Positions 16,201 to 57,600 are shown, counted from the stretch's first letter. The stretch: DNA of 64,000 nucleotides from Oikopleura dioica (GCA_907165135.1 OU015566.1:9176001-9240000), one strand, 5' to 3'. A program made the numbers and translations. The notes: a model not told the origin generated them from the letters alone.

Positions 16201-19200
16201 TAAGCAAATCAAAGTTGAAACTGTCGATTAATTTTTAATGGATTTCGGTCTGGGTCTGTCGGGAGTGTATTTTTGTTTGTGACAAGAATGTCAGAATGTA
16301 AATGCGTATCCCAGTTCTGAACAGATTTGAAGCGCCCTAGCTATTGTTTCAAGTTGTGAAAGGTTTAAATATTGAAAGACATTAATCTTTGAAAATGCTC
16401 GTGCGCGAGTTGCTACCACCGGATCGAGCTACCATCAACGGCCGCATGGGCACCTGAACCTGGCCCCTCGATGGGCAAAAAATTCAAAAAAATTGTGAAA
16501 AAAATTCAAAGAGAAAACTCAAAACACAAGAAACATCGATGGTAAATACCAATTTATTGAAAAATTTTTCATAAAAAAAAAGAATTTCAAAGAGAAAATC
16601 GAAAAAACGGGAAGTTTTTAACGCATTTTCGGGGGTGAGAATTTCAACAATTTTGACAACGACATTGGTTTAACTCGCCAAGGTCATAATTTTGAAAATT
16701 GAGTTGCGCCAGCGACATAACAAAGTTGAGTTTTAGAACTTCAATGTTCGGGGCGTCGTTTTTCATTTCCTCCTTTTTTAACACTAGCGGATAAAACCGA
16801 CAAGAATTAGTGTTTTCTAATTGAATCAGTTCTCACGAGCCGAGCCGGCGATAATGCGCAATTATGAGCTCTCTCAGCAAAACGCAGATATTCGACTCTC
16901 TGATCGACGTTTCAAGCTAGCCAATGTGCCCAACTTCAGCCCGGCGGCTAAAGAGGTTAACGAAATCGAATAAAAGCCGAGGAAAACTCGGTTGAAGAAC
17001 TCAATCTAGCTCGAAGAATAAGAACGAGTCTATTTCTATTTTTCGCTGGATTTCCGCGATTTTCCAAAGCGAAAATTCGCGGAATCATGAAACGGAAACG
17101 ATGAGGAGAGATGGGCAAGAAAACCTTTGTCATAGAAAAGGGGGAAAAGGCAGATATTGACGTTGGCTTTTCACCAGTTTGAAAAACTAGCTGCATCAAA
17201 TCGGAACAATTAAAAACCAGCCCCTACTTAGAGAACGGAACCGTGGTTGTTTACAAAGATGTTAAAGGGCGCCCACTCCGATCTCATGAGCGAATTTTAG
17301 CGTAAAACGTCTCCACTGCGAAAACGGTTTTTGTTAAACTTTCTCTAGCTCGCTACGACGCAGACGCCAAGATGAGCTCGCTGAGTTCGAAGAAAATCCC
17401 GCTGAATGGGAAAAAATAAAGGTAATTTTAAATTCCAAAATCACACCGCTTTTTTCACTTCTTCAAATCTTCTTTTTGCTAAAATTCCTATTGTTGCTTT
17501 CTAAGCCATGAAAATCAAGCTCAATATGACGGAGAACCCGCTCAAAAGAAAGGCTCAAATTATTTCATACTTGTAATCACGGCTTTTCGAATATTCGAAT
17601 ATAGCAGCTATCTGAGTTCAAGCAAAAATTAACGAGTCAGCAATGAGATTAGCGGTTATGTTAAATTGCAACCTTTTTTTCAGAAACATCTTCGGGGTCG
17701 AAAACGCGTATGCATCAATGTAGGCGGCACAAGACATCAAGGTTCAAACTCAATTCAACCTCCCTATTCGCTTTCCTAATGGATTTCTAGTGCTATGGTC
17801 TACACTGGCGCGAATTCCTAAGACGCGTCTCGGGATGCTGCGGGACACAACGTGCATGTGGGATCTCAAACAACTGGTGGACGACTACTGCCCTGAGACG
17901 GGCGAGATCTTCTATGACAGGCATCCGGGCTATTTCAACACCATCCTCAATTTCTACAGGTAAGTTGAAAGAGAGAAGATCGAATTGTCGATGACGAGCT
18001 CGCGGCTCTTTGCGGCCTGCCAGACGATCTCTTAGTCGATTAACTTTCACGCCGCGCAGAAAGAGAATGATCGGATACTCAAACTCAAATTATGACGTAA
18101 TCGGATAAATTAAAATTGAGATAATTTTGACAATTGCAGGTCTTGACATCAATAATTGAACTTGAAAATTGAGATAAGATAATAATTAATTTGAAATTTC
18201 CACTGTTCGAATTATTATTTAAATTCTAGAGCGGCTCCTAAGGAAGAAGTTCTTCTTTTTCCACGTGGAAACAAAGCTCTGTTTTTGTCAAATCTGCTCA
18301 GTTTACGAATTCTACTGTCAGAAATTTTCTATTTGATTTGAGACAGAAATATTTACGCCCCTGAGATTCTGAATTTATCGAAAGATGACTTTCAAATTCA
18401 ACTCTCAATTTCAACGCTCAAAAAAAGAGGGACTGTTTTGATTTTGCCACACGAGCGGGCGGCGTAAATTTGTTATGCTCGGCCAATGTGAAACGAAAAC
18501 TATATTGGTGGTCGTACGCGCCAAATAGTATTATTCTCGTAACTATACGCGAACTTGGAGCTTTTGAAATTTCATTTTCGAAAATCACGGAGCCGAAAAC
18601 GTGAGAAACTAATAATGAAATCAATGAAAATTTATAGCGAATATTTTTTCTCTCTTCAGAACATCGAAATTACATATACCCGAGGATGTATGCTCACTGT
18701 CATATGGCGAGGAGCTAGACTACTGGGGCATTGACGATATTTACATCGAGAGCTGCTGCCAGGGCCGGTACCACCAGCGCAAGGAGCAAATCGTGGACGA
18801 GAAGCGCCGAGAAGAAGCGGCACTCGGCGACGGGGAAGACGAATTTGCGGGCGTCACGTGTTGCGTCGCGCGCCGCAAGAAAATGTGGGACCTACTAGAA
18901 AAACCAAATTCCAGCTTCTCTGCCAAAATCCTAGGAACGCGGTTATCAGACAAAATGCATGTAATGCAAAAATTCGAAGCTCGAAATAGAAAGCCACTTG
19001 ATCGGATATTCGAAAACCCAAAATATCGTGCCCAATTATCATGTTAGTTTTTCAACTATAAGTTCTTATTTCTGTCGATAACCTCGGTAAAGCCATAATT
19101 TCTGTATTATTTATTGTACTTTCAACAATCGCACTATCACTCAACACGATGCCTGACTTCAAAGGTACTCTCTAAGTTCGCTTCCTTCTTTAGCCAGGAA

Positions 19201-22200
19201 TTGTAGATAAAGCAGAGCTTAATCATATCGAATCGGTATGCATTGCCTGGTTTACGATGGAGTATGTTTTACGCCTAGGACTGGTTCTCTCTTTTTCTAA
19301 AATCATAATATTGAGTCGACAAATTCGTATAATTTTATCATCAAAGGCTCTTTAATTATATTCGAGAATCTCTTTATAAGCTGCTTCGCCCGACAAATGG
19401 AGATTTCTCAAGTCTCCCCTTAATATCATAGGAATCGGATTTAATATCAACCCTAAACCTGAAGAAATTGGCGGTTTAAAAAGTCTCCATACTCGACCAC
19501 CTTAATTTTGCATCTGTCAGGCGGGACCTGCATCTAAGCGTTAAAACTCGATTATCGGCGAAAAATCGGGACTTATGTGAATTCACGTACCACAAACGTA
19601 AAATAATTCAAATTCGCAGTTCTTCTGTTTTTGCAGACTTGTGAAAAACAACGAAGACAAATTAAATCCGAAATGAAGATCTCACCGCGATATTGCCTTA
19701 TTACATCACCGTCTTTTTAACCGAGTCAAATGCTAACTTGCTGGAATTTCAAAACGTCCGCCGGATTGTTCAGGTAAGAAAAAAATATTTTATTCTATTC
19801 GAGTTTTCAAAACAGATTCCAAAGAGCAGATTATGCAACCATTAACGATGTTTTTTGATTAATTTCGAGCTCAAGAATTTCGATTTTTAAAACGTAAGAA
19901 TGCAAAAATTGTTGCTATGATAATCTTGGAATTAATTGGAAGGAGCTGCAGGTGAACGATGTTTGGTGGTGCGCCGGCGTCTCTTTAGAACCGCCACCCG
20001 GACTCATCGAAAATGCACAAGTCCCCAAACCACATGATCGCTCAATTTAAATAACACCGCCACGCGGCTCTGACTCGCACCTTCCATTTCCCGAGACAGA
20101 GATTAAGGGTATCGTAAGCGGTCTGAAACATCCTGTCGCTAGAAAATCAGAAAAGTTTATTTAGTACTCTAGTTCGCGTAAAATGCCCACAACGATGCAT
20201 AAAACATATTTCAAAAATAATTAGTCTTGTATACATTTTGCTGGCGCAATTAACCACGTGCCCATGCAAAGCGTAATTCACAACAAGTTATTTTAGATTT
20301 TTCGAATCATGCGAATTTTACGAATTCTGAAACTGGCGCGCCACTCGACTGGTCTTCAATCTTTAGGCTACACAATGCAACGGTCGTACGAGGAACTCGG
20401 ACTGCTTCTTCTTTTCTTGGCCATCACCATTTTGAAACGGTTATAAATTTAATTCGGCTTTCCTAAAAGAATAGTTCTCGGATAAAGCTGAGTCAGGCTT
20501 TCACTTCACTCGTTAATTTTTCCCGAAAAGCGGTTTTTATCGTTTGTGAATAAAGCGCCCGATATCAAGTTTTCCTCGTCTGCGCGGAAAAATAATCGTT
20601 ATCGGACTTTTGACGAGTCAAGTGTTTCACGCAAGCGGCTTCCGATAAAGGTTGCCCATCCAACGTGGATTTGCGCTCTTGATTGAAGCTGAAAATTGCA
20701 TGAGAAAACATAATAACCGGTCTGAGATCTTCTCGTCGCTGTGCTACTTCGCGGAGAAGGAAAATAACGCTGAGATGTTCTCTTCGATCCCGTATTCGAT
20801 GTGGTGGGCTACTATCACAATGACAACGGTAAACGCACGAACCTGACTGACCTTTTGCGTTTCAGGTGGAGTTTGATTACCCATACTATGGTACTACAGT
20901 GTACAGAGCCTCCCTAACAGTGGCACACTTCCTAAAATAATTAAGACAAAACTCAATGTTCATTCTTGTCAATCTATATTTATATATTCTTCCGGTCATT
21001 TTCAGCTTCTTTTTTCGCATAAATACTTTTTAAAATTTTGAAAATATTTATTTTGATAAAAAAAAACGAAAAATACGCAAAAAAATAATGAAAAAAAGAG
21101 AAGCTAAAAAGGCCATTTGTCGATAAATATCGAAAAAATTTGGCATCTTTACCAAATTTTGTCCTTATTCTTTCCCCAACAGCTGTTGAAGCCGTGGTTG
21201 AGAATTTTGACAATCAAAATTTCTTCTATGGCGAGCTTGTTTTAGTTGTTAGTTCTCGCGCATTCCACACAACGTGTAGTATTTCTTGCGATATGCCCAG
21301 CGAATGTTGAAAATCGCCAGTCATATTGAAGTAAAATCGATGAGCTATGATAGTAATGCGTGTCCGCAGCATTTCCAACAAACATTGTTTTAATGATTTG
21401 CTTTTTTGAGGCCACGCAATTGGATAAGAAAGTGCTTGCAGACGGAGAAATACTCAAAGAGCAATATTAATTTCTCATTTTCCTTTTTTCAAGGCACCAA
21501 GAGTTAGGATAAGGATTCTTCGGAGACGATTCTAACTGTATTTCTTCAGCTAGCAGCATTTTCTTTCAACCCTATCATATCATGCGTACTCCTTTCCATC
21601 TTTATATCCATATCTACCTACCTGTAGAAACCTGCTCCCACTTCAAAATCAATCTCTGCCTCAACGCAAAAGTTCGCAAATTTTCATGAATGTACCGTAA
21701 TCACTCCAAAAAAAGAATAACCATAGAAGGCCCGTAAATTGCGAGGCAAAAGTGAAGATTTTGAAGTGGCCTAGGGAGAAGCAAAACGCTCTTTTAGGTC
21801 GGCTATGGAGACATGTATCCGAAAACACCGATGGGAAAGATTGTCGGCTGCGTTTGCTGTATTACAGGTACAGTAAAGAAACGGTGAAATTACTCTCATT
21901 CGCCGATGATTTGAGAATTGGGATCTTAATTATCATTCTAGGTGTGTTGGTGATTGCGCTACCAATCCCTATCATTGTCAATAACTTTGGCGACTTCTAC
22001 AAGCAGCAAAAGCAGCTGGAGAAGAACATGAAGCGAAAGGAAGCTCTGGAAAAGGCGAAAGAAGAGCATTCCATCTTCGCAGAGGTGAAAATGAGCCAGT
22101 ACAACACGCCGGATCGTCACTTTGGCTCGAAGACGCCGAACTCGATCAAGTCCGCGAATAGAAACGAGGACACAATCAGGTGAGCCAGAATCGATTGAAC

Positions 22201-23552
22201 TTCCTGGAGACAGGCGAAGTGTATGCGTTGTAATTCAGCATAAGGACGGGGCTAGAATCATCAAGTGTCAAAAAATACAGCCGCAACTCGTCCTTCTGTT
22301 TGTCAAGGTTGGCGACCTTACAGCGAAGGAGTCTGTGGCTTCCTGGATCGACAACTGGCCGCACCAGGTGTCACCAGTAAAAGCCAAAGCGAACATTTCG
22401 TATACACCTTGCGTCATCTTAGTATTCCGTTTATTGGATACGTGTTGGCTTATCCTATTCGAGCTTTTTTTGAATTATTGGCACTTTTATTGCACTTTAG
22501 AGAATTTCCGACTAGCAGTATATTTTACGTTGACGTAGAAACGAAACTAGAAAATTGCTTAGCTTTCAAATCGTATTATTTTAGAGAACAAAAAATATAA
22601 GCTTGTGGCTTCTCAGTTCAACTAACGCAATAATTCCTTTTCCGCTTTAATAACCACAAAGGCAAACTTTTTTCGGAGTAACTTTCTTTCTTCCTATTTT
22701 ATGATTTTCATAATTGCAAATTTTTACATTTCCCCCAACCGTCGATAGCTCAGTTGGCAGAGCGGGAGACTGTAGAGGGTTAGCAGTTATCTCTAGGTCA
22801 CTGGTTCGAATCCGGTTCGACGGAAGCTTTTTTTATTTTTCAAAAGATTTCGTCCCTTTTTGAACTCTTTTTTAGTGAAAAAATTTGCGAAAAAACTCCT
22901 GTAAAAACTTCACGCACGCAAGAAAACTACGTCATTCAATCGAATAATATTATGTGAGTACAGAACTGTTGATTCCCCAGGATTAACTGTAACACCCAGA
23001 AACGTGCCGGGCACGATCGTGACCGAGTCTGAACCTGAGTCGTCAATAATGTTCCAACACAACGCAACAGAAGCTCTCCAACAAACAACCTCACAACAAA
23101 ATAAACCGGATCAAATGCAACCCAAGAACCAAACTAACAATAACAACTCACCAACTGAGGCTAGCGCGACTTCTTACGAGCCAGAGAACAATCTTTTCAA
23201 CAGGTACTAAGGTTCACTCTTGTCCAGCATTCTTGGCTTGAAAAATCGAAGTCGATTTTTCGAATAAAATTATCGCGTAATGGAAATCGCAAGATTTTCG
23301 TCAAGCAAAGCTCAGAAGTTAAAAGTTAAAACTAATCTGTTTAGTAATACTATTCTTATCTTCGAGTAAGAAGATTTTTATAACCCGCACCGGCGTCAGC
23401 GAGCTATTCTAAACACGTTTTGTGTTTTGTTCTTTTCTAACAAGTGGTGTTCCATAAAGTACTTTCTTCTTAGGGATCCAAAACCTTCGAATTGCCTGCT
23501 AGGCGACGCGACCTTTCTCAACTACATCGACAAGACGCCCGACAAGGAATGA
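13268..23552 (+). CDS. KCNB1: Shab/Kv2 voltage-gated potassium channel alpha subunit
   Basis: Core exons: 17684-17741, 17791-17959, 18660-18934, 19093-19164, 19198-19278, 19381-19431, 19679-19773, 20297-20434, 20727-20828, 21798-21867, 21942-~22180. They encode the T1 domain ([35 protein letters not shown]), S4 ([24 protein letters not shown]), the pore ([14 protein letters not shown]) and S6 ([16 protein letters not shown]). Phase-consistent 5' exons (13268-13474, 15454-15472, 15952-16077, 17349-17421) and 3' exons ending at TGA 23550-23552 are less certain. The start codon was not found. Confidence 0.93.
22739..22824 (+). tRNA. tRNA-Tyr(GTA) with a 13-nt intron
   Basis: CCGTCGATAGCTCAGTTGGCAGAGCGGGAGACTGTAG[agggttagcagtt]ATCTCTAGGTCACTGGTTCGAATCCGGTTCGACGGA. 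The cloverleaf stems pair, the intron follows position 37, and an oligo-T terminator lies just downstream. Confidence 0.95.
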
Positions 23553-26500
23553 CTTTACCTCCAAAGAAATGTCACTGATCGTTGTTGACTCCCTTAACCC
23601 TCAACTTCTCATACACCTGATGGCTTCAAAAACAACACACTACTTTCACAGCAACCTACTATGTATAAGCAGAGCGAAAACTATCTAACTGTCTGGCTAT
23701 TTTTTGACTCTTTTGCGCATATTCTAGCGCGGGCAACTTTTCAAAACTCAAATTTCAAGCCAATCAACACGCCTTTTAGTCAAGACAACGCGCTCAAGGC
23801 AACGCAAAAACCTTCGATTGGGGGCATGAGGAGGCGTTTGTGTGTCTTAGCGGCAATGGCGAGAGAAAAATCTTTTGGCGCGAAATTTGAATTTTGTAAT
23901 TTGGCGGGCTTCTTTTATATAAATTTCGTGCACGTAATAATTTTGCTTGCATGCGGGGGCACGAAGAAAAGTGCCTTTGAGATGATATTTCAACAATTTA
24001 TTTCAACTTTCATTCTTTTGATTTTAACAAAAATCATAGTACGTTAACATGTGCATTATTGGAAAAAAAGCCGAATATCGTTATTATAATGTTTATTTCC
24101 TCCTGCATGCTTGGTGACAAATCCGATCTTTACCTACCATCTTTTATAATACTATCTATAATTCATTTATATTTCCAGCACAGAGATTATTCATTAAAAA
24201 CAATCACCAAAAGTAAAGGCTTGATAAACAAGTTAAATTTGCAATAAGTTCAATAAAGCGTTGTTAAATAAATACAGACCAATAAAATTGGAATTCCTTC
24301 TTTCTGTCTTGCTTAAAATCATGATACGGGTTGGAATAGTATGGTTTTGCGAGTATTTTATATTTACAGAGCAAAAGGGGGGATATACAGTACTTTACAT
24401 AAACGGCTCTTCATTCTGTTTCCCAATCATCTTCTTCATAATCTTCTCCAGAGGCGATATTCTCCAGACATCAATATTTAAATGAGATGATTCAATTTTC
24501 CGAGAATGAGAAATTTTCCCAGAAAATCAATTTATTCGAAGTCGATAAGAAAAGAGAGTAATTTGCCATTTTTATAAAATGAATGAATTATTATTTATAG
24601 ATTTTTAGCTCAAATTTAAGAGTTCCGCCCTTTTATTAATTAAAATTTTTGATACAAATACAGAATTTGAATGTTTGTGTTAGTCTTGTATGTCAAATTA
24701 GTATTTACATGATTGATAGTTTTTGAGTTGGCCAATCAGATGTGCAAAAACAGCGCCACCCAGCGATAAATTTCAAATCGAAAGTTGGGCGAATATATTT
24801 ATATACGATTTTGATTGGGCTGCTCGATGGCGCGCTTCCGCACAAATTTCTCGAAATCTGATTGGCTGAGATTAATTTTTCGCAATGAAAGTTGAAAATC
24901 TTGCGCCAACTAAAGCAATGGTTTTCCTCCACTCAAAAATCAACCTTAAATTTTCACTCAAAAACAAAGCTAAAATTTTTATGACCAATTTTTAGCCAAA
25001 AATTTTGGATAAAAATTCTAGCGGCAGTGAAGCTTGAAAAAACGTGGGCGAGGAGACATATTGGTGTCAATAATTGGTTTTGAAAATTGAATTTTCGAAA
25101 TTTTAAATATAAAAATTGCTTCGAAATTTCAACCAAAAGCGATTTTATCATGGACGGGTCAACTGGAAAAATTTACAACTAATATATTTCTGAAGCTCTC
25201 AGCGGTTTATTTTCTTAAACATATGAAGATAAAACTCATTTGTTATTATTTTATATCAAATTACTAATTTAAATAATTTTTAAGCCGCTTTCCCTTTTAA
25301 AATTTTTTATCCTGATCTTCTTGCATCGACTTTTTCCAAGACATCTGCGTAAACACCAAGCCATTTTTGTTCCAATTGCTAAAATTTTGTTAAAAAAACT
25401 CAGGTTTTTTTTGCTTAGAATTCAAGAATTAGCTTTCATATCTATCTAGTTATCAGTATTTTCAGACCAAGTTCAACATAATCTTTGGTTGCTATTTGAG
25501 GTTTTGTTATCAATGGACAGAACACCGCGAAATTTAAAATTTGAAAATTTTGCTTTCTGTCTTTTTTAGATCTTACTCCAAGTTTGTGCCAGAATCTTCC
25601 TTGCTGGCGACATCCGTCCATGTGTTCCCAAATCCAGTTTCTCAAGTTGTTGAAGATTTGCTTCGAGCTTCTAGTCGGATCCAGAGGAATTGGATCCTGG
25701 AGTTTGCTTTATCGAGTTAACCTTTGATTTTTTAAGGTTTTGTTTATTCACGTGGATTTCAAGATCTTCAATTTTTAAATTAAAAAAGAGAACTTGCTTT
25801 TTCGCCCGAGAGAGAGAGAGAACTCAGCTGGTTAATTTTTTGGAAGAACTCCTCAGCTGCGGCGCGACAAACTCACTCAAGGAAAAGATGAATCATACGT
25901 AGGACGAAATCATCAGCGCGAAATTTTAATAAATCGAATTGATATTTTTTGGGAAGGTGTGAAATTTGTTCTAACTTGAAGTTTTTTTGGTGAACTCTCC
26001 TTCCGTCGGGGTTAAACAGGTTTCCACCACTAGAAGATTTGTTAAATTTTGCACAGAAAAAGAATATATCAGTGATTTGAGGGCTATGTTAGAAAAAATG
26101 ACAATAAAGTGCCTTTGAGCCCAGACGGGTTAAAATTTAAATCGTTAGAAAAGGCCTAGAAAATTATAAGAATTAGCGCAGACTTACCCAAGTTCTCGCA
26201 CTCCAGGACTTCTCCGCTTTCTTTTTCTGTTGTACTGTGGTTTACTGTATTGGTGGTTTGAAACGTGCGCGTGCTTGATTTTCTTACTTCCGCGCGGAAG
26301 GTGGTTAAAATTCCGCACAATAATCAAAATTTTGTTGGCGAGTTTCTGTGTAAAAGAAAATCCGAAATCCACGAAAAAAGAAGAGGGATAAATTGTTCCG
26401 TCAAGTGAGAATTAAGGGATCCCCGGTGCTTATTTTCTCAATATTGAAAATTGGCTAACCACGTGGCTTCGCAGCCTTCGAGAAAAAGAAAGAGCTCAAG

Positions 26501-28532
26501 CAAGGGCTTTCTTTTCTGTTTTGAAATAAATGTATTGATAGTTGCGGCGAGCAAATTCGCTGGAAAGGAAGTTGAATTTCTCCAGGTTCGAAATTAAAGC
26601 TGCAATCCGTCAATGGGGCCCGCCTTGAGCGGAAGCGGCCGAGGTCCTTCTTGAGCGACTCACAAAAACATAATTACAACCCGTTGCCTTTAGTCTGCTT
26701 GGTTACCTTCTATTCCATTCGAAAAAGGCACTAACTCACGTAAACTTGCAATTATAATTACCCGGATTTGTTCGTTGATGTTTTGTCCGCTCCCTTAATC
26801 CTATCTCTTCGAGAAAATTTTCACCGAAAATTTCGTGTATTTTAAGTTCGTTTTAAAGTACCTTTAGTTCGAACTCTCGAATTTATTTTCACTAGAGATT
26901 TTTCTTCTAAAAAGAAATAAAATCGTAAGACACCGGTAAATCACTGTTCCATAGAAAAGTGTTACCAGCAAATTCATTAGAGCGCTAGAATCGGATCGAG
27001 CTGGCTTCCGGATTAAAAATTACACCGAAGGCCCCTTCCTGCTCCTTGTTGGAACAAGACCGGTTAACCACGAATTTTCGCACCAATTTCGATCCAACTT
27101 CGAACAATTCTCTTTCCGCGGTCGAGTTTGCGGAACAATTCTTACATAACAAAATAATCCACAATTATTTCGTTTCTTTTTCTGGTCACTTTGAGTTGTT
27201 TTAAGTTGGGGGCGGAAAATTTTCGCGGTTGTGAAAATTCACGAAAACTGGAAAACTTCGAAAACTTGGCTCCATGAAGGAGCAGGTGAAGTTGAACTAG
27301 TCGGACTTTGGTCGCATTACTGACTCACTTTTTTGTGTCTGTTATTTCAAATAGAAAGCTCTGAGCTAAAAATCAGGGTTCAGAGGTTTTTAAATTGTTC
27401 TCGTTTTCGGAAGAGGTTATACTGATAATATACAGCTCACGCGTTCTAGCCACATTCCTTCGACATTTTTCGTAGCTTTCGGCGATCCGATCCGTTTTGT
27501 TTTTGATCCGTTGCTAAAATACAATCAGTAATGAGAGGCAAGAAGCAATTTTGATCGTGTGTTGTGCATTTATTTGCAGCACACGTTGAATTATGTTCAC
27601 ACGACTCGACGCAGAGGGTTGATGCGGTTTTACGAGCACTAGTTATCGCTCAGTTTAATTAACGAATGATATGATAACTTACCCGCTTTTGGTACCGAAA
27701 AAAAATTATTTGAAGCGCTTTCGTAATTTTTAAATACCATAATTTGAAAAAAATAAAACAGGAAAAAACACGATTTATAAAAAATAAGGGTGTCACTAAT
27801 TTAAAAAAAAGCTGGTCCAAATAGCCGTTTTTAGAATCAAAATTGCGGTGTGACGATTTTTTTGTTAATTTTGAATTTGAACATCAATTTTATTTTTTCT
27901 TCTTTTTTCACAACGGTTGATAATTCATAAACAATGTGAAAAACGTGGTTCGAGAGCAAAACCACTAATTCCGAAAATATTATTTTAGAATTTGAACACT
28001 CTTCCTCGCCTATTAGAAAAAAATTCTCGTTAGAACGTACCCGAGGAATTTGACCCGCGCCGACCTGCCAGGAACAAACCTATTTAGCACTGGGTTTTGA
28101 GCTTTGATGCTCAAGAGTATCCGCACGTTTAGTGCTTGAGAGAAAAAGATCAAGTTATAAAACTCGTCGAACCTCAGAGCTCTTCAAAGAAGTGGCTGTG
28201 GCTGGTCTAACAATATTTAAAAAGTGAGATTTTCAGAATCCCTTTCTTAGAGTTTCTTTTTTTTTTTCTTCTCGATTTTTGATTAATTAAGGGTCTCGAC
28301 ATAGTTATTAAGACTGGACGGGAAAGAAAATTTCAGAGTAAGGGTCTTTGATGAGATTTTTGACAGGTCCAGTTTGGTTCTTCAAGGGAAGGTGAGCATC
28401 TTAATCGAGTTTATTCAAAATCATGTTTTTAAAGCACATCCGTCAGGATATTCTCACGCTTCGAGTTTTTCGTGAAAAACAAGATTCGAATGTTGCTAAA
28501 GGAAATGATCTTCAGAAAAAGATAGATTGAAT

Positions 28533-40339: not shown

Positions 40340-40412
40340 CGCCCGATGTGGGACTCGAACCCACGACCGTTGGATTAAAAGTCCAACGCTCTACCGACTG
40401 AGCTAACCGGGC
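40340..40412 (-). tRNA. tRNA-Lys(TTT)
   Basis: The reverse complement is GCCCGGTTAGCTCAGTCGGTAGAGCGTTGGACTTTTAATCCAACGGTCGTGGGTTCGAGTCCCACATCGGGCG (73 nt), a canonical cloverleaf. Confidence 0.95.
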
Positions 40413-45614: not shown

Positions 45615-48600
45615 ATGTCCCGCCTGGTGAAATTGTTGCTCAGCTTTTTGAAGCTCAGCTCCGCGCTCAACGAGCTTTACTACGACATCTCAAAGACCAA
45701 GAAATGTGACGAGGTAAGAGTCGCGACGAGTTATGCGGCCAAAGATGATTTCTGCATTTTCGCGGAAGCATAGAAAGACTCATTTTTCTCGAAAATAATG
45801 AATAATTTGATCAATCAATTTTCGGCGAAAAAGTGCGTAAGTCTTCAATTTCGTAAGAAATTTTGCAAAAAAAACTCCTTGGCAGAGATTCTTGAGGTAC
45901 CAAATGCGTTGAAAAAAAAAATCAAGTTTGTGTAAATTCACCCTGCGCACCGGTCACGTGCGGATTTTTGCGTCAAAGCCGAATAGAACCTTTTCATTTG
46001 ATTCACACAGATCAAATTTACAATTTACCAAGTTTTATTTCAAATGATGAAAGTTCGCGATTAAAAACTAGAAGACTACGTGTACCGAACCTCTTTTTCG
46101 TGCTATCTCAATCTTTCACTTGCTCTGAGGAATTTAGCAAATTTCTTATCGCATATTATTGAGACTTGGAAACGTGGAATATTTCTTATCAGAAGCTGTG
46201 TTGTAAATCAATTCTATCGGAGTTTAAATGATTTTCCAAGCATTCAATCAAATCAAAATCTAACTCAAAAGAATGAAGAAGAAATTACGTGGCCGTATTA
46301 TTGAATTTTTACCGAATCAAAGCCAAATATTCTTTGAATATTTGACCGAACACGTACGTAAATAGTTTGGGCTTGTCATCAATTCATTAGAAACATGATA
46401 CTGTTTTTCGACGAGCTCCAAGAAAAGTGATAAGGCAATTTAGATAGAAGATATAAAGAACTTAAATTTTAAAAAGTGATTTGCGGCGTGTTATCGCCAA
46501 TTTCGACCTCCGGACAAGAAAATTAAACGAAAAATATTATTTCGGCTGATAAAAGGAGCCACTCTCGAAGATCCCCAATGGACCAAAGATTGTTTTCCTT
46601 CGCTTGAATAATTATGTTTTGAAGAAACCACTAAATCGTTAATGCCCGGCCGCTACTGTAGAAAGCTTGGCACGTTCTGTAAGGAGATTTTACGCATAAT
46701 GCGGCTTCCGCAGAAATATTCTACCGACCAGCACTTTTGGTTTTTAAATTATTACTTTGATTTTTAATTTTTATTTTTTACCTTTTTCTTCGTTTATTAA
46801 ATTAATGTTTCTTTATAATTTGAAAAAAAATAAAATATAATTATTTATTGTTCATTGCGTAATAAGTAATTACTAACGTAATGATTTTTTTTCTTGGACA
46901 TTCTTGGTACTAAGACAAAATCAAATATTTAAGACAAAAATAACAAGCGCCAACTCAAAATTCTCCTTGTAAGAATAGAACGAGCTTATTCAGAAATAGC
47001 AAAATAACATTTCGTAAGAAATTTGCCAAAAGCAATAGTGCTTCAAAACGTGAACAAATGATCTATGATTATTCTCTCTTAAATTTTACTGTAAAATTGA
47101 AAATGAAAGAAGGAAAGATGCAGATGACGCAAGAGTTGAAAGGTTTCTTGACGGATAGACGGCTGAACTGAGTGCAGCACTAGAATATTTATTTAACGTA
47201 AAGGCTCCACAATATTTTGTGTTTGTATTTTGGTCTATCTTTGGGTACGTAAGAGCGTCCCTTCTATGACTAGGTTGGAGTACTAGCAGATAGCTGTAAA
47301 TCGTAACCCAGCGCTGGAAAACCGGAAGAAACCTCCGGCAATATAAGCCGGGCGCAAATTTCCGGCCACGTATTTTTCAACTTTCCAAAAACAAAAATAA
47401 ATGCGGTCCTTTTTTGATGACTCATCTACTGCATTTGATCTCGTAATTTTGGTTCACCACTTTGGGGCACTGTCGTGGTGACAAATAACTGTTAGTGACG
47501 TTATCTAGCGCAAACAGCAATTACGACCCGTTTCAGCCGCTTTCTAACCCAAAAAGATACCACTCGTCATTATTTTTTGCAAATGGTTAAATTTTCGTCT
47601 TCCGTTTTATTTCTTGCTCCTCTCACCACCGCGATAGCCAATTTTAATCATCGCCTGTGCTGGAATTAATTGTATCCTAGATTGCGACGGAGCAAATTTT
47701 AAAAGAAGAGCTGGACCGCATGCTCGCCAAGAGGGTTGAAAATGAAAATAACGCTTTCTCTCTCTGTCTCTTGAGGCGACGAGATAGGAATTTAATTTAA
47801 AGAATATTCGATTTGTTCGTTGAAATTCATCTTGAACCCGAATATTGAAAAAATAGTTAAGTTAATCAAGTTTCTTTCTTCGAAAACATAATTTTCCAAC
47901 CTGTAAAGATCCGCGATTCTACGACATCCGCTTGCGACCATATTTCGGCCAGAGTAAGTAGCGCTTTCTGTATTAATGCGCCCTTACTGTAGGTCTTTAA
48001 CATAACAATGAACCTATCATTAAAAACTTGGCTTTAAGACATATTTTATTTTTGCTTTTTTTGATTGATCATTTTCCAAATTTAAAAATCCCTTGTCGCT
48101 TAAAAAATTCTTCCTTTTTGACAGATTGTAGATAAGGAAAGTTTATAAAGATTTCACGTGAATCACTCTCTGAGCTGCTTGGGCTAAAGTAGGGGGATTG
48201 TTGTGATAAGGTGAAGGATGTTCGTATCCAGGAGGGATTAGTAGGTGCGGCCTCCGGTTAATTTTTTGTGATAAACCAGGAAAGCGGATATGGCCTACGT
48301 AGGAGAACATTTTTCTTATGCGGTTTATTCTTCTCCTCCCTTCTTGGCTGATACACGACTTCGAGAAATATTAGATCTTTTCTTTCATAATAGAAATTAC
48401 TCAAAACCCACTTGAAAATGTCGCTTGTGGAATATTTTTGAATAAAAAAGGTGGAACAGGCAGATTCTTTTCTAAGAACTGTCACAGCTGGTATCTTCAA
48501 AAATGAGATATTCAAGAGCGAGTGAGTCAGCACGTGATTCCAAGAGAAGCTTTCTAAGAAAACATTCGCTTCGTTTTCAAACTTTCAGCTTTGAGTTCAT

Positions 48601-51600
48601 TTTTTCAAGGCCGATTGGAACGCCTATTATCGTGCAAACTCGGCTAAAAAGGCTTTTAACGGCGAGATGTTATGACAAATCTGTTCTTAGGGCGAATTAT
48701 TTAAAGGCGCCCCGAAGACAATTTTCAGATTTGACAATAATCTCTGTCAACCTATCACTTTTCTTTAGAACCGTTTAAAATACTGTATTTGCATGTTAGA
48801 AATACGCTCATTTATCCGATTTTGCGATGCGTTAATCTCGAAGTCTATATTTGCTTTTAAAATTTGATCAATGTGAAGGGGCCAAGAATTTAATGAGCCA
48901 GTGCTTGAGTAAAATGCTCGTTTAGAACTGATCACTCTTCGATCAGGGGGCCATCTCTCTGATGGCTTATAGGAAGTGGTATTTATTCGGCCAAGTTGAC
49001 GTAGCCGGCAAAATTTTCGATGAGACGCCATAGAAATTTGACTTATTTTGATCAGTTTTCAGCCTCTAAAAAATCCTTAAAAAAACATTAAAGAAAAAAG
49101 TTCAAAAAAGAATTACGTGACTATCATCAGGCCCTCATCCCTTAATATCTCGTTATCATAGTCGCCCACTACCTGGATCGATTGATAAGCGAATTTCTAG
49201 AGAACGGATCGGATGTTCCACAAAGCAGCTCTCCGTATCAATTTTCTGTACAAGAACAAAATATTAAATTTTATCGCAACCTTGCTCCTTGATAAAAGTG
49301 CTATCTTCTAGCTCGTAGGGACGAAAACGTCGACTAAGACTGATATGATGGGGCTGTTTTAGAGGCGTCTTATCATCGTATATATCGGGGGTTTATTGAA
49401 CGAAAATAGTATCATTTTGAGTTTATCACAAAAAGGTTCAAAAGAAAATGGCAATAGCGAACTTTCTTTTGATTTTAGAAAGACATCCATCATAAATTTC
49501 GAACCTATCTGCTCGCGGAAGTGCTCGATTCTAGAGCTCGATTGAGCCCGGAAAGAGACTCGAATTTCAAAAACTCTTGAATACACCGCTCGGTTTATTA
49601 ATTGTTCGGATCAGAAATTTATCCAGTAAGACTCCTCCTCGATGCAAACTTTTGATGCGTTGAGTTGAACCGCTTTTTTTGGCTGCACCTGAGTGAATAA
49701 GAAATATTTGGGAAACAATTTCGGACCGGAAATTATCCCCTTATCTTCTCATCTTCTTCGCCCTTCTAAACGCGGGACTGAATAACCTCAAGGCGCGAAA
49801 AATGATCCGGTTCTAGCTCATCCTACCCGCAATACAGGAATACCGAGTTCTTATCGCATAAAAAACTGCTATCTGATCCTAGATCTAATAGATAAGACAT
49901 CGTAATTTCCTGATACTTGCTGCCCCATTTCATAAAAAAACGGATAAGCAATTATTAAATAAGCCAATAAGAAATCTTTCTATTTCTCCAATTTCCTCCA
50001 ATCAAAATCACTGCTGTAAACCATTATTTCATCAGTGGCGCTATTAAATGAAAATTCGACCAATCAGCAAACAGTGAATTTTAATAAAGCGCCATCTATC
50101 GACTTTATTTCCTGCCCCCATCAGATCCGTGTTAGTATAGTGGTGAGTATTCCCGCCTGTCACGCGGGCGACCGGGGTTCGATTCCCCGACACGGAGAAC
50201 TTTTTGATTTCATTTTTATTAAAAATTATCAAAAATAAAAAGTTCCAAGTTAGAATACTCGGTTCAGGAAGAAAAGCCAAAATCTCAGATAACCGAGCAA
50301 GCGCCAATCGCATACATCCTGAACACACGATAAAGCCCTTTATCTTCCCCCTTCTTTGACACAAGGTCACTGTAGTAAAATCGCGTTTTTAGATGAATCA
50401 GTCGATGTTGGAATTGGAATCGACGTTGCGCAAATCGACGATGTCTCGGAAGTGAACATGGGTCAGGGTTGCCCGGACGCGGATGAGTTTGTAAAAACTC
50501 GAACTTCCGACTGGGTCAGGGGATTATCCTTCGGTTCAGGGCAACCGTGCGGTAGATTTCCAATTAACTCTTTACTTCCAGCAATCGTGGATCGATCCGC
50601 GCCTCAGGAATGAGTTTTCTCAAAGGATACCCTTATTTCTAGGCTTGGAAACATGTGTGAGTCACAGTTCTTAAAGGTCTTTAATAAAATTAAAAATAAC
50701 CTCAAATGAGATTCACGCCTGGAACAGTCAACTGTTCAGTCAACCTGGATTCCCGCGTGATCGACAACATCTGGCTTCCAGACATCTACTTCATCAACGA
50801 CAAGAAATCATTCGTCCACGATGTGACTAGGCCCGCGTTTAAAACAATTTAATTCTGACGGATGGGCATTTTCAATGAAGATGTATTTTTTACCAACGCG
50901 CGCGGAGAAAGAACCGGATGATGCGGCTCTATCCGGATGGACGCGTGATGTATGGACACGGGCGGAGATGAATTTTAACTTAGTCCTCTTTTTCGAAAAA
51001 TGACCTTTTAGACTTGTTTTTTCAATGATTGAGCAAACGGGAAACGCGCAAGTTCCGTAAAAGAAGACCACGCTCAAATAGAATGTGATCCAGGGCATTG
51101 AACAAGTACCTAAGCTTCCCCCCAATTTGAAAACCCTCTAATTTTCATCCTTTTAGGCGAACAAAACCACATTATTATTATCCCGCTGCGATTTTGCAAT
51201 CGGCCGGCCACAAGTATTCGTGGCGACATTTGTCTTAGTACTCGTTTACAAATTGTTTTCACGGCAAATTCGAGATTGACAATTTCACCTTGTCAACGAG
51301 ACTGACGATGTCACGATCAAATCGTCAATTTTGCCAATTAACGTATTTATTACGACATAACGACTCGAGAATCCAGAACTGTTCGAAAATCAATTTACTC
51401 CAATAACAAACTTTTGCAGAATCAAAAAGTTTCAAGTTTTTTTGAAATTTTTCTTCAATAATTTATTTTTCACGCTCTTTCATCCCTTTCCCACGGCGAC
51501 GTAAACAGGAAATTGTCCTAGTTTCACCCAATCAATAATTTTATGATAATCTGACGGGTAAATCCCTTTTAAGCAGCTATTTATCCGACAATAGTCCGAC

Positions 51601-54600
51601 TCGTCTATCGTCGAAAAGGCGCTTTTCTAGCTCCACTCACGTCATCCTCTTTCCTGAGTCAAATTTTCATACTCCCACGAGTTCCACGAGAGTTTCCAGT
51701 AAAACAGCAAAGATGAGATAGCGTCTGTTAAAAAGTGCGCACAAAATCGCGGCAGATAAATCAAGCGCGACACGTTGAGCCAATTCTATTTGAAATTTAG
51801 AACAGTTATCAATCAACGAAAATGACAGCCCTTAATTCATAAAAGGGGCAATTATGTTACGATACAAGAAGAATGTTCTTTCAGACGTAATAATGTAACC
51901 CATGAATTTAAGCGAGGGATCTGAAAACGCTATTTTTGAGCAAAGTATTCTCCTTAATTTAAGATAGTGATACTGATACCCTTATCCGTTCATGCTCGAA
52001 TGCTTGAAAATCTGTCTCACGAAATTCATCTTCAATTAAAGAGCGCGGCTTACGATTCAGCTGAGTTGTATGATGCATCTTCAACGATATCCGCTGGATA
52101 CACAAAATTGCACTTTGGAAATCGAGTCATGTAGGTTCAATCAATTATTTTTTTTTGCATTTTGAAAACAGGATCGCTCAATCTCTAAAACGCGTAAAGA
52201 AAGAATTACGCGGATAGAAAGACGTGGCCAATTGACCATGAGGCAAGCTTAATCCCGGATTATCATTGCAGCTTATTACCAAGATGCGAGCTTCGCGATA
52301 ATTTTAATGAAATAGATTTATTCCAAATTATTTGCGGCTTTCAATAACTGTCGAATAATGAGATAAATGCTGAGGGTACATTTTTAATTGCCTATTTCTC
52401 GAAAATAGACATAAAAAATGCACTTTAATTATTCTTTTGACCGCGCAACAAATACCTTATTACTTTTCAACTCAAAAAACTTCTGGGCCAACCAAAGCCC
52501 CAACAACAAAAATTAATGAGTAAATTCCATTCCAGCGAGATGCAAAAGTCGGAACAGAGTGGATGTTCGTTAGGAGTCGCTCAATGCTGTTTCCGTTTCT
52601 GTTTTTAAATATTTAAATAATCGAATTTTGAAGATGGATACGCCGCGGATGACCTTAAGCTTTCAATGCTTGGTGGAAGGAACATGTTCAACATGCAATT
52701 TTTTCGAAGGGAGTTCCCTTAAGTTTTGAACATAAAAAAGCCAGGAAAAAGCAGTGACTGGAATTGACAATCTTCATCTTTCACAATTCGAGGTATTTTG
52801 CTTATCTAAGGAACCACCCTTATTCGACTCGGCGGCTTTAGAAAGTCCGGAAATTTATCCGTTGGTTACATAAGTTTTCCCTTCTTGAGTATTACAAGAT
52901 TATTTTGTGGCTTCTTGGTTCCACCTTGATTTTAATTGGCAAACATGAGGCGAAAAATGACCGTAACAGATTTGGCTGGTTTGAGCTCTAAAGCGTAATG
53001 CTACGCATCCGACTAAGAACCGAGCCATGTAAAAATATCATTTTCCTTTCTTATCGCCAACGTGAAATCATTAACAAGCTGCTTGCTTTTTCTAACGTAA
53101 ATGCAATTAAGAAACCCAATCCCTCGCTTTGAACTTCAAACAAACCAGGCCTCAGTTATTGCTGATTTTAGGAAATGATCTTTTTGTTATTCGCGAACGG
53201 CAAAAATGAAACACTTGTTCATCAAACTCTGCCTTTCATTTTATATGTATTTGTAAAGTATAGCTTTTCAGTAACTAACTAAGCGGGGAATAACAAGATT
53301 GTTATAGAAAGCGTCTTCCATTTTCACGAGTTTGATAGAGCAAAAGATTTCGATTTTCGCGGTTTTCGCTCTCCTCAAAGAGAGGCAAAATCGCTCGATT
53401 CTACAGAAAGAATCAATTATACGTTTCATAAAAAATGCTCAAAATCAGGAAATTCACCATAACAAGACTTGTTTCATTACAAAGGAATCAAAGAAAAAGT
53501 GATCTGAAAAATTAAGAATTATAAAAAGAAAGTTTTGCTTTTTAGAGCCACATCTTTAAAAAATCAGCGAGCGAAGTTTTTTATTTCAAAATCTGTTGAC
53601 GTTTTGGCTCCAGTATTAGTCCGATAGAATGTCTTTGCGGTCAGCAAAGATTCCCGATTACGTAATCGCTCCGGAAATCAGCGGATAAGTTGACACCGGA
53701 AAAACCTAAGGATAAGCCGGCCAACCTAGCTCCCTAAAAAGAACTCATCCCGACCTTCTTACCAAAGCTTATTTCTTAGGTTACCGACTTCCAATTTGAA
53801 TATCGACTGCAAAACTTCTCCACTGGATCGTATCCGCGTCTTTCTCTTAGTAAGCATTGGAGTATTTATTTACCACGTGAGATCCTTCTCCCCTTGACCC
53901 ATTTGTTTAGAGTTCAGACTCAAACGGAACATCGGCTATTTTCTCCTCCAAACGTACATGCCGTGCTCGTTGATAACGATTCTCAGGTGAGTCAAAAATT
54001 TTGTCAACTTGGAAGGCGATTTTGACACACGTTGAATGGCAAAGATAAGCGCTCCTTAACTTTGGTTTGAAAAATAGGAAACTTTAATTAATCCACCTGG
54101 GGGCCCTTGGTGATTTTGATAGATAACCGCATTAAATGGTTTTAATTCTTGCTGAGCTTGAAAATGTGATTTAATCTTAATTCAAGAGTCATTCAAGAAC
54201 AAATTTCTAAAAAATAATCGAACAATTGCATCACATTTCTTATCAAATAAGCTTCAAATTATCTAATAATTATGGTCATGATTTGTGATTTCTGATTTTA
54301 GCTGGATCTCTTTCTGGATCAATTACGAAGCAACAGCCGCTCGAGTTTCTCTCGGAATCACGACAGTTTTGAAAAGGAAAGGGCATCAACTCTGTAATTT
54401 TGTTGTCTGCAATTTTTCTGTAACGAAGCATTTCCGCATTCTGCTGAGCCAATTTCGCTGCGTGGGGCTGAGCAGGTGGCGATGCCTTTTTGAGGGTGGA
54501 ATGTGGTCCTATGCGTTTTTTCTTAGACACAAAGCGTTTCTGATCATAGAGTTAGACAATGACGACTATTTCGACAAACGTGAGAGCTTCGTTGCCTAAG

Positions 54601-57600
54601 ATCCCGGATATCAAGGCCTTAGGTAAGCTTTTACTTTTTTTATTACGATGATTCTTATTGATGGCCCTTGATACCTTTTTAGATGTCTACATGCTGGGAC
54701 GGGTCGGCTCGTTGAACGTATGTATGTTTTTTTGAAAGTGTTTGAAAAGAGCGAGTCACTCAATCACTCGCGATATGGACGAGCCGACGTAAGATCTGTT
54801 TCGTTTTCGTCTTTATGGCGCTGCTAGAATATGCGCTCGTTAAGGGGATCAACGTCATTATAGAACGTCGCGCCAAAACAACTGTAATGCGTCTCAAAGA
54901 GACTGTGACGCCTTCTTTTGTCAGTTTGATATTGAAAGTTCAACTTAAAAAATGAGACCTTAGTTTATCAAAAAAATTGTGAGCAAAATTTCGTAACCTC
55001 CGATGAGGGGTATCAACCCGAAATTTCGTCATCATTGATTTCGGAAAACCACAACGTGGCCTTGATAAGTCTAGCCAAGTGATAAGAAGGGGTCTCTTAT
55101 CCCTTCGCTTCTCTTTCCGCCAAATATTTACTCGGCATGAAACCTGGACCCGTGCTAATTAGAATGGCAGAGATGTCGAGATAGCCACTAATTGCCCGTA
55201 AATACCAATAACAGGCCCAGTTCTAGCGCAGATAACTATTCAATCACTTTTGCAAGGTGTCAAAAATTCACACGCGGCTGACGTTTGGCACCCGTTCGAC
55301 ACGTTTCCGATTTTACCGTAAAAAGGCATCGTTGATCCCCATTTTCGTTAACTACACCTTTTTTGGAAAGAAGGCTCGAGTGGCGAAAAAGAAATTAAAA
55401 GAGTCCCTAAGGTGAGTACCGTTTTCATTTTGATATCCAGCTGCGGGCTGAGCAAACCCTTCACTTTTACTGGAGCTTGTCTAGATTGTCTGACAGCTAG
55501 GATACATACAGTTCTTTCCGTTTACAAATTGACATGACCCAGATGAGAAAAAAGACTATTAGTGTTTGGGAAAATTCTCTCCAAAAATGTAGAATTTCTT
55601 CATCTTTTTTGCAACTCAATGAGAAAGAAATGATAGTTTCTAATTTTAGATTATTTCGTCACTCATTTTTAGACAACGAGAAATCGAAAAGGCTCAAGAA
55701 AGAGCTCAGCGGAATGCCCAAAGGATGGGCATACCTTACAGCACGACGGAATTCGAAGGTAAGACTGTATCACCTTTAGAAAGCGTAAACTGATTCGCCT
55801 GGAATAGAGGTAAATTTAATCCTACTCATTCGTCTCTCCTGTATATTTCTTGAACGGCTAAGCTCCTGTGGAGGTTATTTTCATTTAATTTCAATAGTCC
55901 AAATCAGCACTTTCCCGCTCATCCCTTTTTGATCCGTCTCGCACTGTCTCTCCACGTTTCTCCGTCTCCCAGTCGCCCAAACAACTAAATTTAAGAAAAA
56001 AAAGACAAAAAATGAGCCAGTAATTGGATACTTTGACTTCCGCTCAAGAAAAAAAAAGAACTTCAAATGAGGTTTTCCGTGAATTTTGGTCATGCATTCA
56101 GAAATGAACATTTCAAAGAAATTTTTACAGTAAATTTGGAAAATTGAATTACCGGAAATTTCAGCGAGACTTGATGGATATTTATCTAAAGATCCAAGAC
56201 GGGAAAATTTAAGGGCCCGCTGAATAAACAAAGCCCCAGCTAAATGATAAAATTTTGTTTTCACGGAAAAACATCGTGACAGGCCGGTGACGTGTTGAAC
56301 TTTTTGACTTTTGAAAGATGACTAAGAAGGTTACAGTAAATGTTCCGCAATTGCATAATTGGGCGATGACGTTTTGATTTTTAGAAAAACTCGATGGCGG
56401 CCGAAATATGCTCCTAAGTGGGGATATCAACAAACCATAAATTAAGACACTCTTAGCATCCCTAGTTTACCCTTGCTTTGTTCTGATGTTATCATCTAAA
56501 AGTCGCTTAATTCTGTATATACTACTAAATACCGCTACTAAATACCGCGCTCCTGTAATCCCTAAGTGGCAGAACGGGTAGGTTATCTTGGTCATCGGAA
56601 GAAAAGCAAACAGCTTCATTTACCTGTTGCATCAGAAATTTCATAAACTCTCAGAGCAACATGACTTCGCCGTTAATTAACTAGGCGTAAAACTCCCTTT
56701 CTTTTTCTCGCGTTACGATATTAACCGTAGTATTATCTCAAAATTCGGCCACCTATAGCCGAATTATTCGTCAATATTTTCAATAATTCTTAATGAAAAA
56801 TTCGGCCAAATTGACCGAATTATTGGGCGGATTCTACAAAGTATTTTGGTGAAAAATTCGGCCAGTGAAATTCTCCGTGGACAGTCATTTTTCTTTTTTG
56901 AGGGCTTTCGCAATCGCTATGAATGCTTGTTATCAATTCTGATAATTTGATTTTTTAGGACATTAACCGGACTTATCATTACCACAAGAATTCCGGTCGA
57001 CCTCTTTCTAATAGCAACTGGTCTGCGGCGCAGACTCTGCGCAGTAAGAGCTAGTTGCAGCTCCCGAGGACTTTTTTTTGATAAGAAAATTAAGATCGTA
57101 GTATTCGCTAAAATAAAGGTTAGGGTTAGGGGGCACCTGCAAAAATGACGGAACAAATTACCCGAGGGGGATAGGGTAACCCTAACTAACCCTAGACTAG
57201 ACCCCGGCATCTTAGGACCGAAGGGGCGGAGCCCCGAGGTAAGGAACCATTAGATTGGATACTTTTTTACTGATAAAATGGAGACTCTTAATAAACGAGT
57301 GGCTTTATAGGGGCGCTGCCTTTACTCTTGGGGGCCGAATTATTCATTCAAAATATGAGTATATGAAAATTCGGCATTTGGCCGAATTTTGAGATCATAC
57401 TACCATATTAACGCCGATCCTGCGGCTCATTAGCGATCAATTAGTCAAAGCTCCTAATTTGAAAGACTCACTTCTCAAATCCAATTGCAGATAGAGGCTA
57501 GAAAGTTCGAATTGGAGCGCTAGAAAATGATTCTAAACGGAGATGGTATAGGATTTGAAAGCCCAAATAATTAGGTGACGCGGTCTGTTACACGAAGAGG

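Follow-up and report, generated by a model that had tools for sequence, protein, structure and literature searches.

Terminal stems in the non-GT introns of two Oikopleura dioica genes and their possible part in splice-site recognition

Two genes and the junctions of their introns

We analyzed a 64,000-nucleotide stretch of the Oikopleura dioica genome (GCA_907165135.1 OU015566.1:9176001-9240000), hereafter the window, which carries two plus-strand genes with introns that lack a GT donor. Its GA-AG introns, very small GT-AG introns and relatives in marine metagenomes agree with an Oikopleura-type larvacean. The first is a Kv2 (Shab-type) potassium channel gene, located at ~17.4-23.0 kb of the window in our rebuilt gene model, and the second is a GABA-A beta-like Cys-loop receptor gene that extends from ~50.4 kb to past 55.4 kb. 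A preliminary description of the sequence had claimed that such introns share a terminal RNA stem in a near-fixed register. We rebuilt the gene models without selecting introns by their stems, and scored all introns in both genes. Once the introns listed below and the GT-AG introns are spliced out, both genes have uninterrupted, conserved reading frames. In the list, the lead and the tail are the unpaired nucleotides between the stem and the 5′ and 3′ junctions, respectively.

Kv2 gene
18935-19092, + strand: GA-AG intron; arms 18938-18947 (CGCGGTTATC) and 19077-19086 (GATAACCTCG) with one C.U mismatch; lead 3 nt, tail 6 nt
19279-19380, + strand: GA-AG intron; arms 19283-19289 (GGTTCTC) and 19364-19370 (GAGAATC), 7 bp with one G.U pair; tail 10 nt
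19432-19678, + strand: GA-AG intron; arms 19435-19445 and 19661-19671 (TCGGATTTAAT/ATTAAATCCGA), 11-bp perfect stem; lead 3 nt, tail 7 nt
20435-20726, + strand: AA-AG intron; arms 20438-20444 (CGGTTAT) and 20713-20719 (ATAACCG), 7-bp perfect stem; lead 3 nt, tail 7 nt
GABA-A-like receptor gene
50462-50555, + strand: GT-AG intron with the weak donor GTCAGG; arms 50467-50474 (GGTTGCCC) and 50539-50546 (GGGCAACC), 8-bp perfect stem; duplex -21.1 kcal/mol
50608-50710, + strand: GA-AG intron; weak, bulged pairing TGAG.TT / AA.C.CTCA; best duplex -3.9 kcal/mol
50831-50907, + strand: GC-AG intron; arms 50834-50839 (CGCGTT) and 50895-50900 (AACGCG), 6-bp perfect stem; tail 7 nt
50961-52043, + strand: 1.08-kb non-GT intron, ends readable as GG-AG, GC-AG or GG-CG; arms 50964-50973 and 52024-52033, 10 bp with one G.U pair; -11.9 kcal/mol
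52680-52740, + strand: GA-AG intron of 61 nt; arms 52684-52691 (ATGTTCAA) and 52726-52733 (TTGAACAT), 8-bp perfect stem; lead 4 nt, tail 7 nt
54372-54555, + strand: AA-AG intron; no terminal stem, duplex -2.6 kcal/mol; reads join the 54372 boundary to downstream exons
54697-54793, + strand: GG-AG intron; arms 54703-54712 and 54779-54788, 10-bp perfect stem, extendable by two AC/GT pairs
~54840-55347, + strand: intron with neither GT nor AG; arms 54844-54854 (GGGGATCAACG) and 55330-55340 (CGTTGATCCCC), 11-bp perfect stem; 7-nt 3′ spacer

Orthologous Kv2 loci were collected from marine metagenomes by a protein search with one Kv2 exon, by look-ups of the encoding contigs and by the scan of one metagenome. 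They belong to the following lineages:

Lineage A: Kv2 contigs 96-99% like the window
Lineage A′: L002, differing from the window at 12.5% of 4-fold sites
Lineage A″: L001 and L027, differing at 37% of 4-fold sites
Lineage B: L003-L006, differing at 58% of 4-fold sites and near saturation at silent sites
Lineage C: L007-L024

Because intron positions vary among lineages, each lineage is an intron-less reference for the others. We tried every combination of donor and acceptor against the reference protein, and intron-less orthologues proved the junctions of 18935-19092, 19279-19380, 19432-19678, 20435-20726, 50831-50907 and 52680-52740. The first two of these introns are absent from lineages B and C; 18935-19092 is also missing from the mRNA contig L026, and 19279-19380 from L027 of lineage A″. 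Introns 19432-19678 and 20435-20726 are absent from lineage C, and the same sites are occupied in lineage B. For the receptor gene, the relative L025 lacks 50831-50907, 52680-52740 and the 1.08-kb intron 50961-52043, where comparison with its protein allows 0-2 extra residues. Two intron-less metatranscriptome contigs represent mRNA. L026, from a sister lineage, spans the whole Kv2 core with a 440-residue frame that is 97% identical to the conceptual Kv2 of the window, and L028, which is 99-100% identical to the exons of lineage C, skips that lineage's CC-AG and GA-AG stem introns.

RNA reads were taken from runs with the same species label and compared with positions 50300-56299, with a coverage that excludes 50556-53900. 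They support the junctions 50461|50556 (where they pass from 50461 into the next exon), 53986|54302, 54371|54556 and 54696|54794, as well as a joint of 54836 to 55345. Their similarity to the window is no more than 90-95%, and the differences fall at third codon positions. The reads come from either a diverged cryptic lineage or a paralogue; reads 99% identical to the window, from its own lineage, were not found in the RNA runs searched. Loose ends of the relative's reads at 54793 carry a 14-nt microexon, 54683-54696 (ATGTCTACATGCTG), located between a GT-AG intron and the GG-AG stem intron.

Conservation of the two proteins had been said to fix the junctions. Most of them are now proven or supported by reads, and 50608-50710 is placed by its open reading frame only. 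At every non-GT junction a sliding of 1-2 nt is possible, since exon and intron share AG (or G) as their last bases, and GA-AG is equally readable as GG-AA or AG-NA. Canonical GT-AG alternatives, tried at each non-GT junction, either break the frame or add residues that are missing from the intron-less orthologues. Two further introns (52131-52633 and 53850-53910) were non-canonical at first look and resolved to GT-AG. The introns are removed precisely from mRNA.

Pairing between the ends of non-GT introns

We scored 16 non-GT and 31 GT introns, comprising those of both window genes together with independently defined introns of lineages B and C and of L025, by calculating the best duplex between the first 20 nt and the last 20 nt of each intron. 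The mean duplex energy of the non-GT introns' own ends is -11.05 kcal/mol, compared to -4.89 kcal/mol when ends are swapped within the set (permutation p <= 1e-5). The same calculation for GT introns yields -4.15 and -3.17 kcal/mol, respectively (permutation p = 0.0065). The own-end energies of the two sets differ (Mann-Whitney p = 1.1e-5), and a duplex at -8 kcal/mol or stronger is found in 12 of 16 non-GT introns versus 4 of 31 GT introns. Two of these four have weak GTCAGG donors and the same GGTT/AACC stem. Control windows placed 20 nt further inward, and flanking exons, reach only -4 to -5 kcal/mol. When whole introns are folded, the minimum-energy structure contains the terminal helix in 9 of 11 short non-GT introns versus 5 of 13 GT introns. 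The preliminary description had proposed a genome-wide comparison of end pairing in non-GT introns, GT introns and controls. For these two genes and their orthologues, such a comparison gives a clear excess in non-GT introns, and the claim of a shared terminal stem holds against both swapped ends and GT introns. The pairing is specific both to the two ends of the same intron and to the non-GT class.

Given how common short inverted repeats of AT-rich sequence are, the stems could in principle reflect chance or a gene-model artefact whereby junctions were picked to fit. An annotation-free scan for inverted repeats with AG|G...AG, covering all lead and tail registers, did show no visible register peak, as ~2,500 chance perfect 8-bp pairs per strand swamp the ~10 real cases. 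However, the junctions were fixed independently of the stems, through intron-less orthologues and mRNA contigs, no intron of either gene was left out of the scoring, and the permutation against swapped ends already contradicts this explanation, which we consider extremely improbable.

A first pair at +3 to +6 with a tail of 5-8 nt occurs in 8 of 14 real duplexes versus 17 of 68 swapped ones (Fisher p = 0.022), so that the register of the stem relative to the junctions is modal and not fixed. The mode lies at +4/+5 for the first pair and at 6-8 nt for the 3′ tail, while the overall ranges are 1-5 nt for the lead and 3-10 nt for the tail; the near-fixed register first described stands in its location and not in its constancy. 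We rejected a fixed 8-bp target duplication with a '2+6' cut, as lead and tail together span 4-14 nt (mostly 9-12 nt) with no constant 8.

The individual stems largely agree with those first described. All of the listed arms are present, and those of 19432-19678, 20435-20726, 50831-50907, 52680-52740, 54697-54793 and 50462-50555 are perfect, but 18935-19092 has a mismatch that went unmentioned, and 50608-50710 has no 7-bp helix, its pairing consisting of 4 bp, a bulge and 2 bp. The stem of 19279-19380, described as weak, has 7 bp including one G.U pair, and 54372-54555, described as having no stem in register, is a true exception to the stem rule. The statement that stem sequences mostly differ overlooked a core that is common to eight stems in lineages A, B and C and in L025, where the 5′ arm contains GGTT and an AACC lies 7-10 nt before the 3′ end. 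In L025's own GA-AG intron, the 6-bp core GGTTTT/AACC starts at +4 with a tail of 7 nt, and the duplex fold adds one A-U pair that shifts these values to +3 and 6 nt.

The ends of the 16 non-GT introns are GA-AG, GC-AG or GG-AG in ten cases and AA-AG in three, with one each of CT-AG, CC-AG and TT-CG, and the structural class is therefore wider than GV-AG, where V is A, C or G. Lineage C contributes a CC-AG intron that is absent from mRNA, as well as a GA-AG intron whose 9-bp stem leaves a tail of 7 nt. The pyrimidine fraction before the 3′ site is lower in non-GT introns (0.49) than in GT introns (0.58; p = 0.029). We found no known RNA family of Rfam in any stem intron, and no second copy of any intron within the 64-kb window.

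Among introns with good donors, a single one has strong end pairing. In intron 17960-18659 (GT-AG, strong donor GTAAGT), a purine run at +10..+20 pairs over 11 bp with the intron's own pyrimidine tract at -14 kcal/mol.

Evolution and possible function of the stems

Compensatory substitutions between lineages, which the preliminary description had suggested looking for, are found in one intron. The orthologue of 18935-19092 in L027 (lineage A″) is a GC-AG intron with a 13-bp stem (ATTCGTTACAAAA/TTTTGTAACGAAT) that starts at +4 and leaves a 7-nt tail. We anchored the pair counts on the junctions, as automatic alignment of the four orthologues misplaces their diverged termini. Out of ten window pairs, five are changed on both sides, one mismatch is repaired, four are unchanged and none is changed on one side only. 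Given the neutral divergence (0.372 per site), one would expect about 4.7 one-sided changes, and the probability of finding none is 0.0018. The GTTA/TAAC core is retained between the two stems. The intron begins with GA in the window and L001 and with GC in L027, while stem and register are kept, indicating freedom at the second intron position. In at least one orthologous stem, evolution has proceeded through compensatory changes.

Stems recur at both intron positions that the window shares with lineage B, and their sequences are unrelated. At the site of 19432-19678, lineage B has a GT-AG intron with a GGTTAA/TTAACC stem, and at the site of 20435-20726 it has a CT-AG intron with a 5+11-bp stem. 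The 7-bp core CGGATTT/AAATCCG of 19432-19678 is identical in A, A′ and A″, the 5′ arm of 20435-20726 is conserved in L027, the arms of 19279-19380 are identical in L002, and those of 54697-54793 are invariant in L036-L039. Most non-GT introns occupy lineage-specific positions.

Intron bodies turn over fast in L027, where the ends still pair. The orthologue of 18935-19092 (L027 1250-1430) is filled with a ~19-nt tandem repeat (GAAAAATCGGGAAAATCAT) unlike the window's intron body, and the orthologue of 20435-20726 (L027 2700-3139) is filled with palindromic GCGAAGCTTCGC repeats. Within intron 19432-19678, the region 19470-19640 contains blocks of 10-30 nt that are identical in the window, L002 and L027 despite the 37% silent-site difference (for example CATCTGTCAG, GCGTTAAAACTCGATTATC and TGAATTCACGTACC); they have no Rfam match and may form a conserved intronic element of no known family.

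The stems could instead be neutral relics, where recent miniature transposons left terminal inverted repeats that play no part in splicing, and non-GT ends mark young introns while GT ends mark old ones. The transposon-like direct repeat and perfect 11-bp repeat of ~54840-55347, the lineage specificity of most stem introns, the common GGTT/AACC core and the transposon-derived non-canonical introns published for Fritillaria borealis all agree with such an origin, as do two arm substitutions between the window and A′ that break pairs and are uncompensated. Neutral decay is at odds with five double and zero one-sided changes in the 18935-19092 stem, with the stems at both positions shared by A and B, two lineages near silent-site saturation, and with the unchanged 7-bp core of 19432-19678 across A, A′ and A″; a multi-copy family is also absent from the window. 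We hold this explanation to be doubtful, and less likely than one in which the stem is selected.

Matched arms could also be maintained for a reason at the DNA level, either because the elements are still mobile and their ends are recognized by a transposase, or because re-insertion or gene conversion homogenizes them. The perfect 11-bp arms of ~54840-55347 and 13-bp arms of L027 do look young, and the tandem repeats that fill the L027 intron differ from the window's intron body. However, the register relative to the junctions is equal in both lineages (+4, with a tail of 6-7 nt), the GTTA/TAAC core is retained, re-insertion at the identical nucleotide is improbable, and the window holds no further copies. 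Efficient gene conversion needs longer tracts than arms of 7-13 bp. We judge a DNA-level cause to be very unlikely.

Intron ~54840-55347 has neither GT nor AG in any of its 8 registers (54837-55344 to 54844-55351). A 7-nt direct repeat, TCGTTAA, lies at both of its borders, and its removal is supported by the read joint of 54836 to 55345 and required by the open reading frame. The intron is present with intact arms in L036-L038 (~96% identical) and starts in L039 (93% identity), a contig that ends inside it; it is not a private insertion. With its perfect inverted repeat flanked by a direct repeat, it resembles a transposon that inserted and duplicated its target site. Such a duplication is clear only here; one is perhaps present in a lineage C intron (TCAAG), and elsewhere only an AG dinucleotide is repeated.

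In an alternative excision that is measured on structure, as proposed for the nonconventional introns of euglenids, the spliceosome would not be used, and an enzyme would recognize the terminal helix and cut both strands at a fixed distance from it. Such an excision would account for introns without any GT or AG, including ~54840-55347, whose arms are intact in all related contigs that reach it, for the CT-AG and CC-AG stem introns of lineages B and C (the latter removed from mRNA), and for the weaker pyrimidine tract of non-GT introns. The register here (~+4 to ~-8) is also close to that of euglenids (+4..+6 with -8..-6). Against this, 13 of 16 non-GT introns retain a 3′ AG in their preferred register, 11 of 16 start with G after an exonic AG or TG, as a relaxed spliceosome predicts, the non-canonical introns of Fritillaria are reported to need a U2-type spliceosome, and the register varies (leads of 1-5 nt, tails of 3-10 nt). 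We find such an excision quite unlikely. By the same analogy, it is an unlikely prospect that a chordate would possess a second intron-removal route, in which the terminal helix rather than GT and AG would set both cuts at a fixed distance from its base and would erase transposon insertions from exons whatever their ends. If such a route exists, ~54840-55347 would be its clearest substrate.

We favor a mechanism, with a probability of roughly 0.55, whereby the introns derive from transposons and selection keeps the terminal pairing, which would help the spliceosome find two otherwise poor splice sites. The former terminal inverted repeats of the transposon would persist as an RNA stem that runs from ~4 nt inside the 5′ junction to ~7 nt before the 3′ junction. 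By looping out the intron body, the stem would bring both junctions within ~10 unpaired nucleotides of one another. The donors lack a GT complementary to U1 (AG|GAA...) and the pyrimidine tract is poorer, and the stem would stand in for these signals. By holding the two cleavage sites side by side and marking their limits, it would serve a permissive U2-type spliceosome that still prefers G at +1 and a 3′ AG. Most stem introns would accordingly have a transposon origin, to which the direct and inverted repeats of ~54840-55347, the shared GGTT/AACC core and the lineage-specific positions point; the stem would have a causal role in splicing; and the spliceosome, not another enzyme, would probably be what removes these introns. 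The preliminary description had offered the positioning of weak splice sites and a relic of terminal inverted repeats as alternatives. Each receives partial support, through the maintained pairing and the direct repeat at ~54840-55347, respectively, and the two are not exclusive.

Several observations weigh against this mechanism. Introns 54372-54555 and 50608-50710 are spliced, on reading-frame evidence, with little or no stem, and the stem is therefore not obligatory. The compensatory pattern comes from one intron only. A comparison of the window with A′ reveals 3 substitutions among 56 arm bases, of which one turns a G-C pair into G.U and two disrupt inner pairs; this number is not significantly lower than neutral evolution predicts, and within-lineage variants spare the arms but are too few for a test. 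As no intron is repeated in the window, only the target-site duplication of a single intron and the common GGTT/AACC core point to a transposon family, which is otherwise not demonstrated; this lack of second copies also speaks against a family that is currently active. A stem that starts at +4 would have to open before U6 pairs with the 5′ splice site. The sample comprises two genes and their orthologues, and the link between the stem and splicing efficiency is one that we infer from sequence.

The window and the orthologous loci have other features. At 20829-20940 (also at L003 ~4045-4115 and L013 ~3990-4045), a 37-nt GT-AG mini-intron directly follows the Kv2 pore-helix exon, and a short frame of 24 residues and a stop comes after it. 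The start of this frame is conserved as DNA in lineages B and C, and its possible use as an alternative terminal exon would cut the channel short ahead of the GYGD selectivity filter. Positions 21798-21985, which cover the pore exon, a 74-nt intron and the S6 exon, match the Rfam family K_chan_RES (potassium-channel RNA editing signal) at 63 bits versus a threshold of 51, and the match may be mere coding conservation. Rfam also identifies three tRNA genes: 22739-22824 (+) inside the Kv2 GT-AG intron 22180-22875, 50126-50197 (+) located ~200 nt upstream of the first mapped GABA-A exon, and 40340-40412 (-). Lineage C has two tandem copies of the Kv2 S3 exon (GPLNIIDITAIMPYY... and SPLNIIDITAILPYY...), at L013 3096-3217 and 3428-3532 and at L020 10907-11028 and 11233-11337. 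The mRNA contig L028 uses the first copy, and the two are candidate mutually exclusive exons.

Comparison with known intron systems

Between 10 and 95% of larvacean introns break the GT-AG rule, and the published answers to how they are recognized concern U2AF paralogues and small nuclear RNA methylation in Fritillaria. If our proposed mechanism is correct, a terminal stem with a preferred register would be a cis-acting part of larvacean intron recognition. It would explain the freedom of the second intron base, and how a transposon that lands in an exon turns at once into a harmless intron.

The closest system is that of Oikopleura itself. According to the later papers that cite the original work, the G(A/C/G)-AG introns of O. 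dioica and other larvaceans are attributed to a permissive spliceosome, enriched among new, lineage-specific introns and precisely removed (Denoeud 2010, via PMC4122922; the 'GV/AG' class, PMC13326754). The introns described here likewise have GA, GC and GG donors with a 3′ AG, lineage-specific positions and precise removal. Unlike the published accounts, which give end dinucleotides only, AA-AG, CT-AG and CC-AG introns and one intron with no GT or AG join the class here. We found no report in the literature consulted of terminal pairing, its register or compensatory change for Oikopleura-type GV-AG introns, where Henriet 2019 and Denoeud 2010 are represented by later papers.

Fritillaria borealis has introns derived from miniature inverted-repeat transposable elements, with terminal inverted repeats, repeats that resemble target-site duplications and species-specific positions, and these introns are removed (Henriet 2019, as cited in PMC11282704 and PMC13326754). 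In the same citing accounts, most of them have AG/AC or AG/AT ends, a YAY (TAC) triplet precedes the 5′ site and recurs at the 3′ end, and the U2AF genes are duplicated. A U2-type spliceosome is reported as required for the non-canonical introns, and work on their recognition concerns U2AF paralogues and small nuclear RNA methylation. Both systems have a larvacean host, terminal inverted repeats, restricted positions and introns that are removed despite non-canonical ends; border repeats that resemble a target-site duplication are clear here only at ~54840-55347. In contrast to Fritillaria, the introns here read G(V)...AG after an exonic AG or TG, without AG/AC or AG/AT and YAY ends, about half of the introns are still GT-AG, and the 64-kb window has no repeated family.

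The nonconventional introns of euglenids form a helix between ~+4..+6 and -8..-6 with a CAG/CTG consensus, and are excised as circles by a probably non-spliceosomal route. They share with the introns here non-canonical borders, a poor pyrimidine tract and a near-equal helix register, which is spread more widely here; duplication-like junction repeats, also known in euglenids, are clear here only at ~54840-55347. They differ in that the stems here have no CAG/CTG consensus and are diverse, with a recurrent GGTT/AACC core, and in that most introns here keep G at +1 and a 3′ AG.

The introner elements of the dinoflagellate Amoebophrya are non-canonical introns with inverted repeats of 8-20 nt and direct repeats of 3-5 nt over their borders, and their authors propose that a hairpin joins the exon borders. 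In both cases, inverted repeats join the ends of non-canonical introns. The introners, however, are multi-copy elements in a protist that apparently has no U1, whereas here a chordate is the host, each intron has its own sequence and most direct repeats consist of 2 nt (AG). If a stem does assist intron recognition in Oikopleura, a chordate would join euglenids and dinoflagellates among the hosts of end-paired introns.

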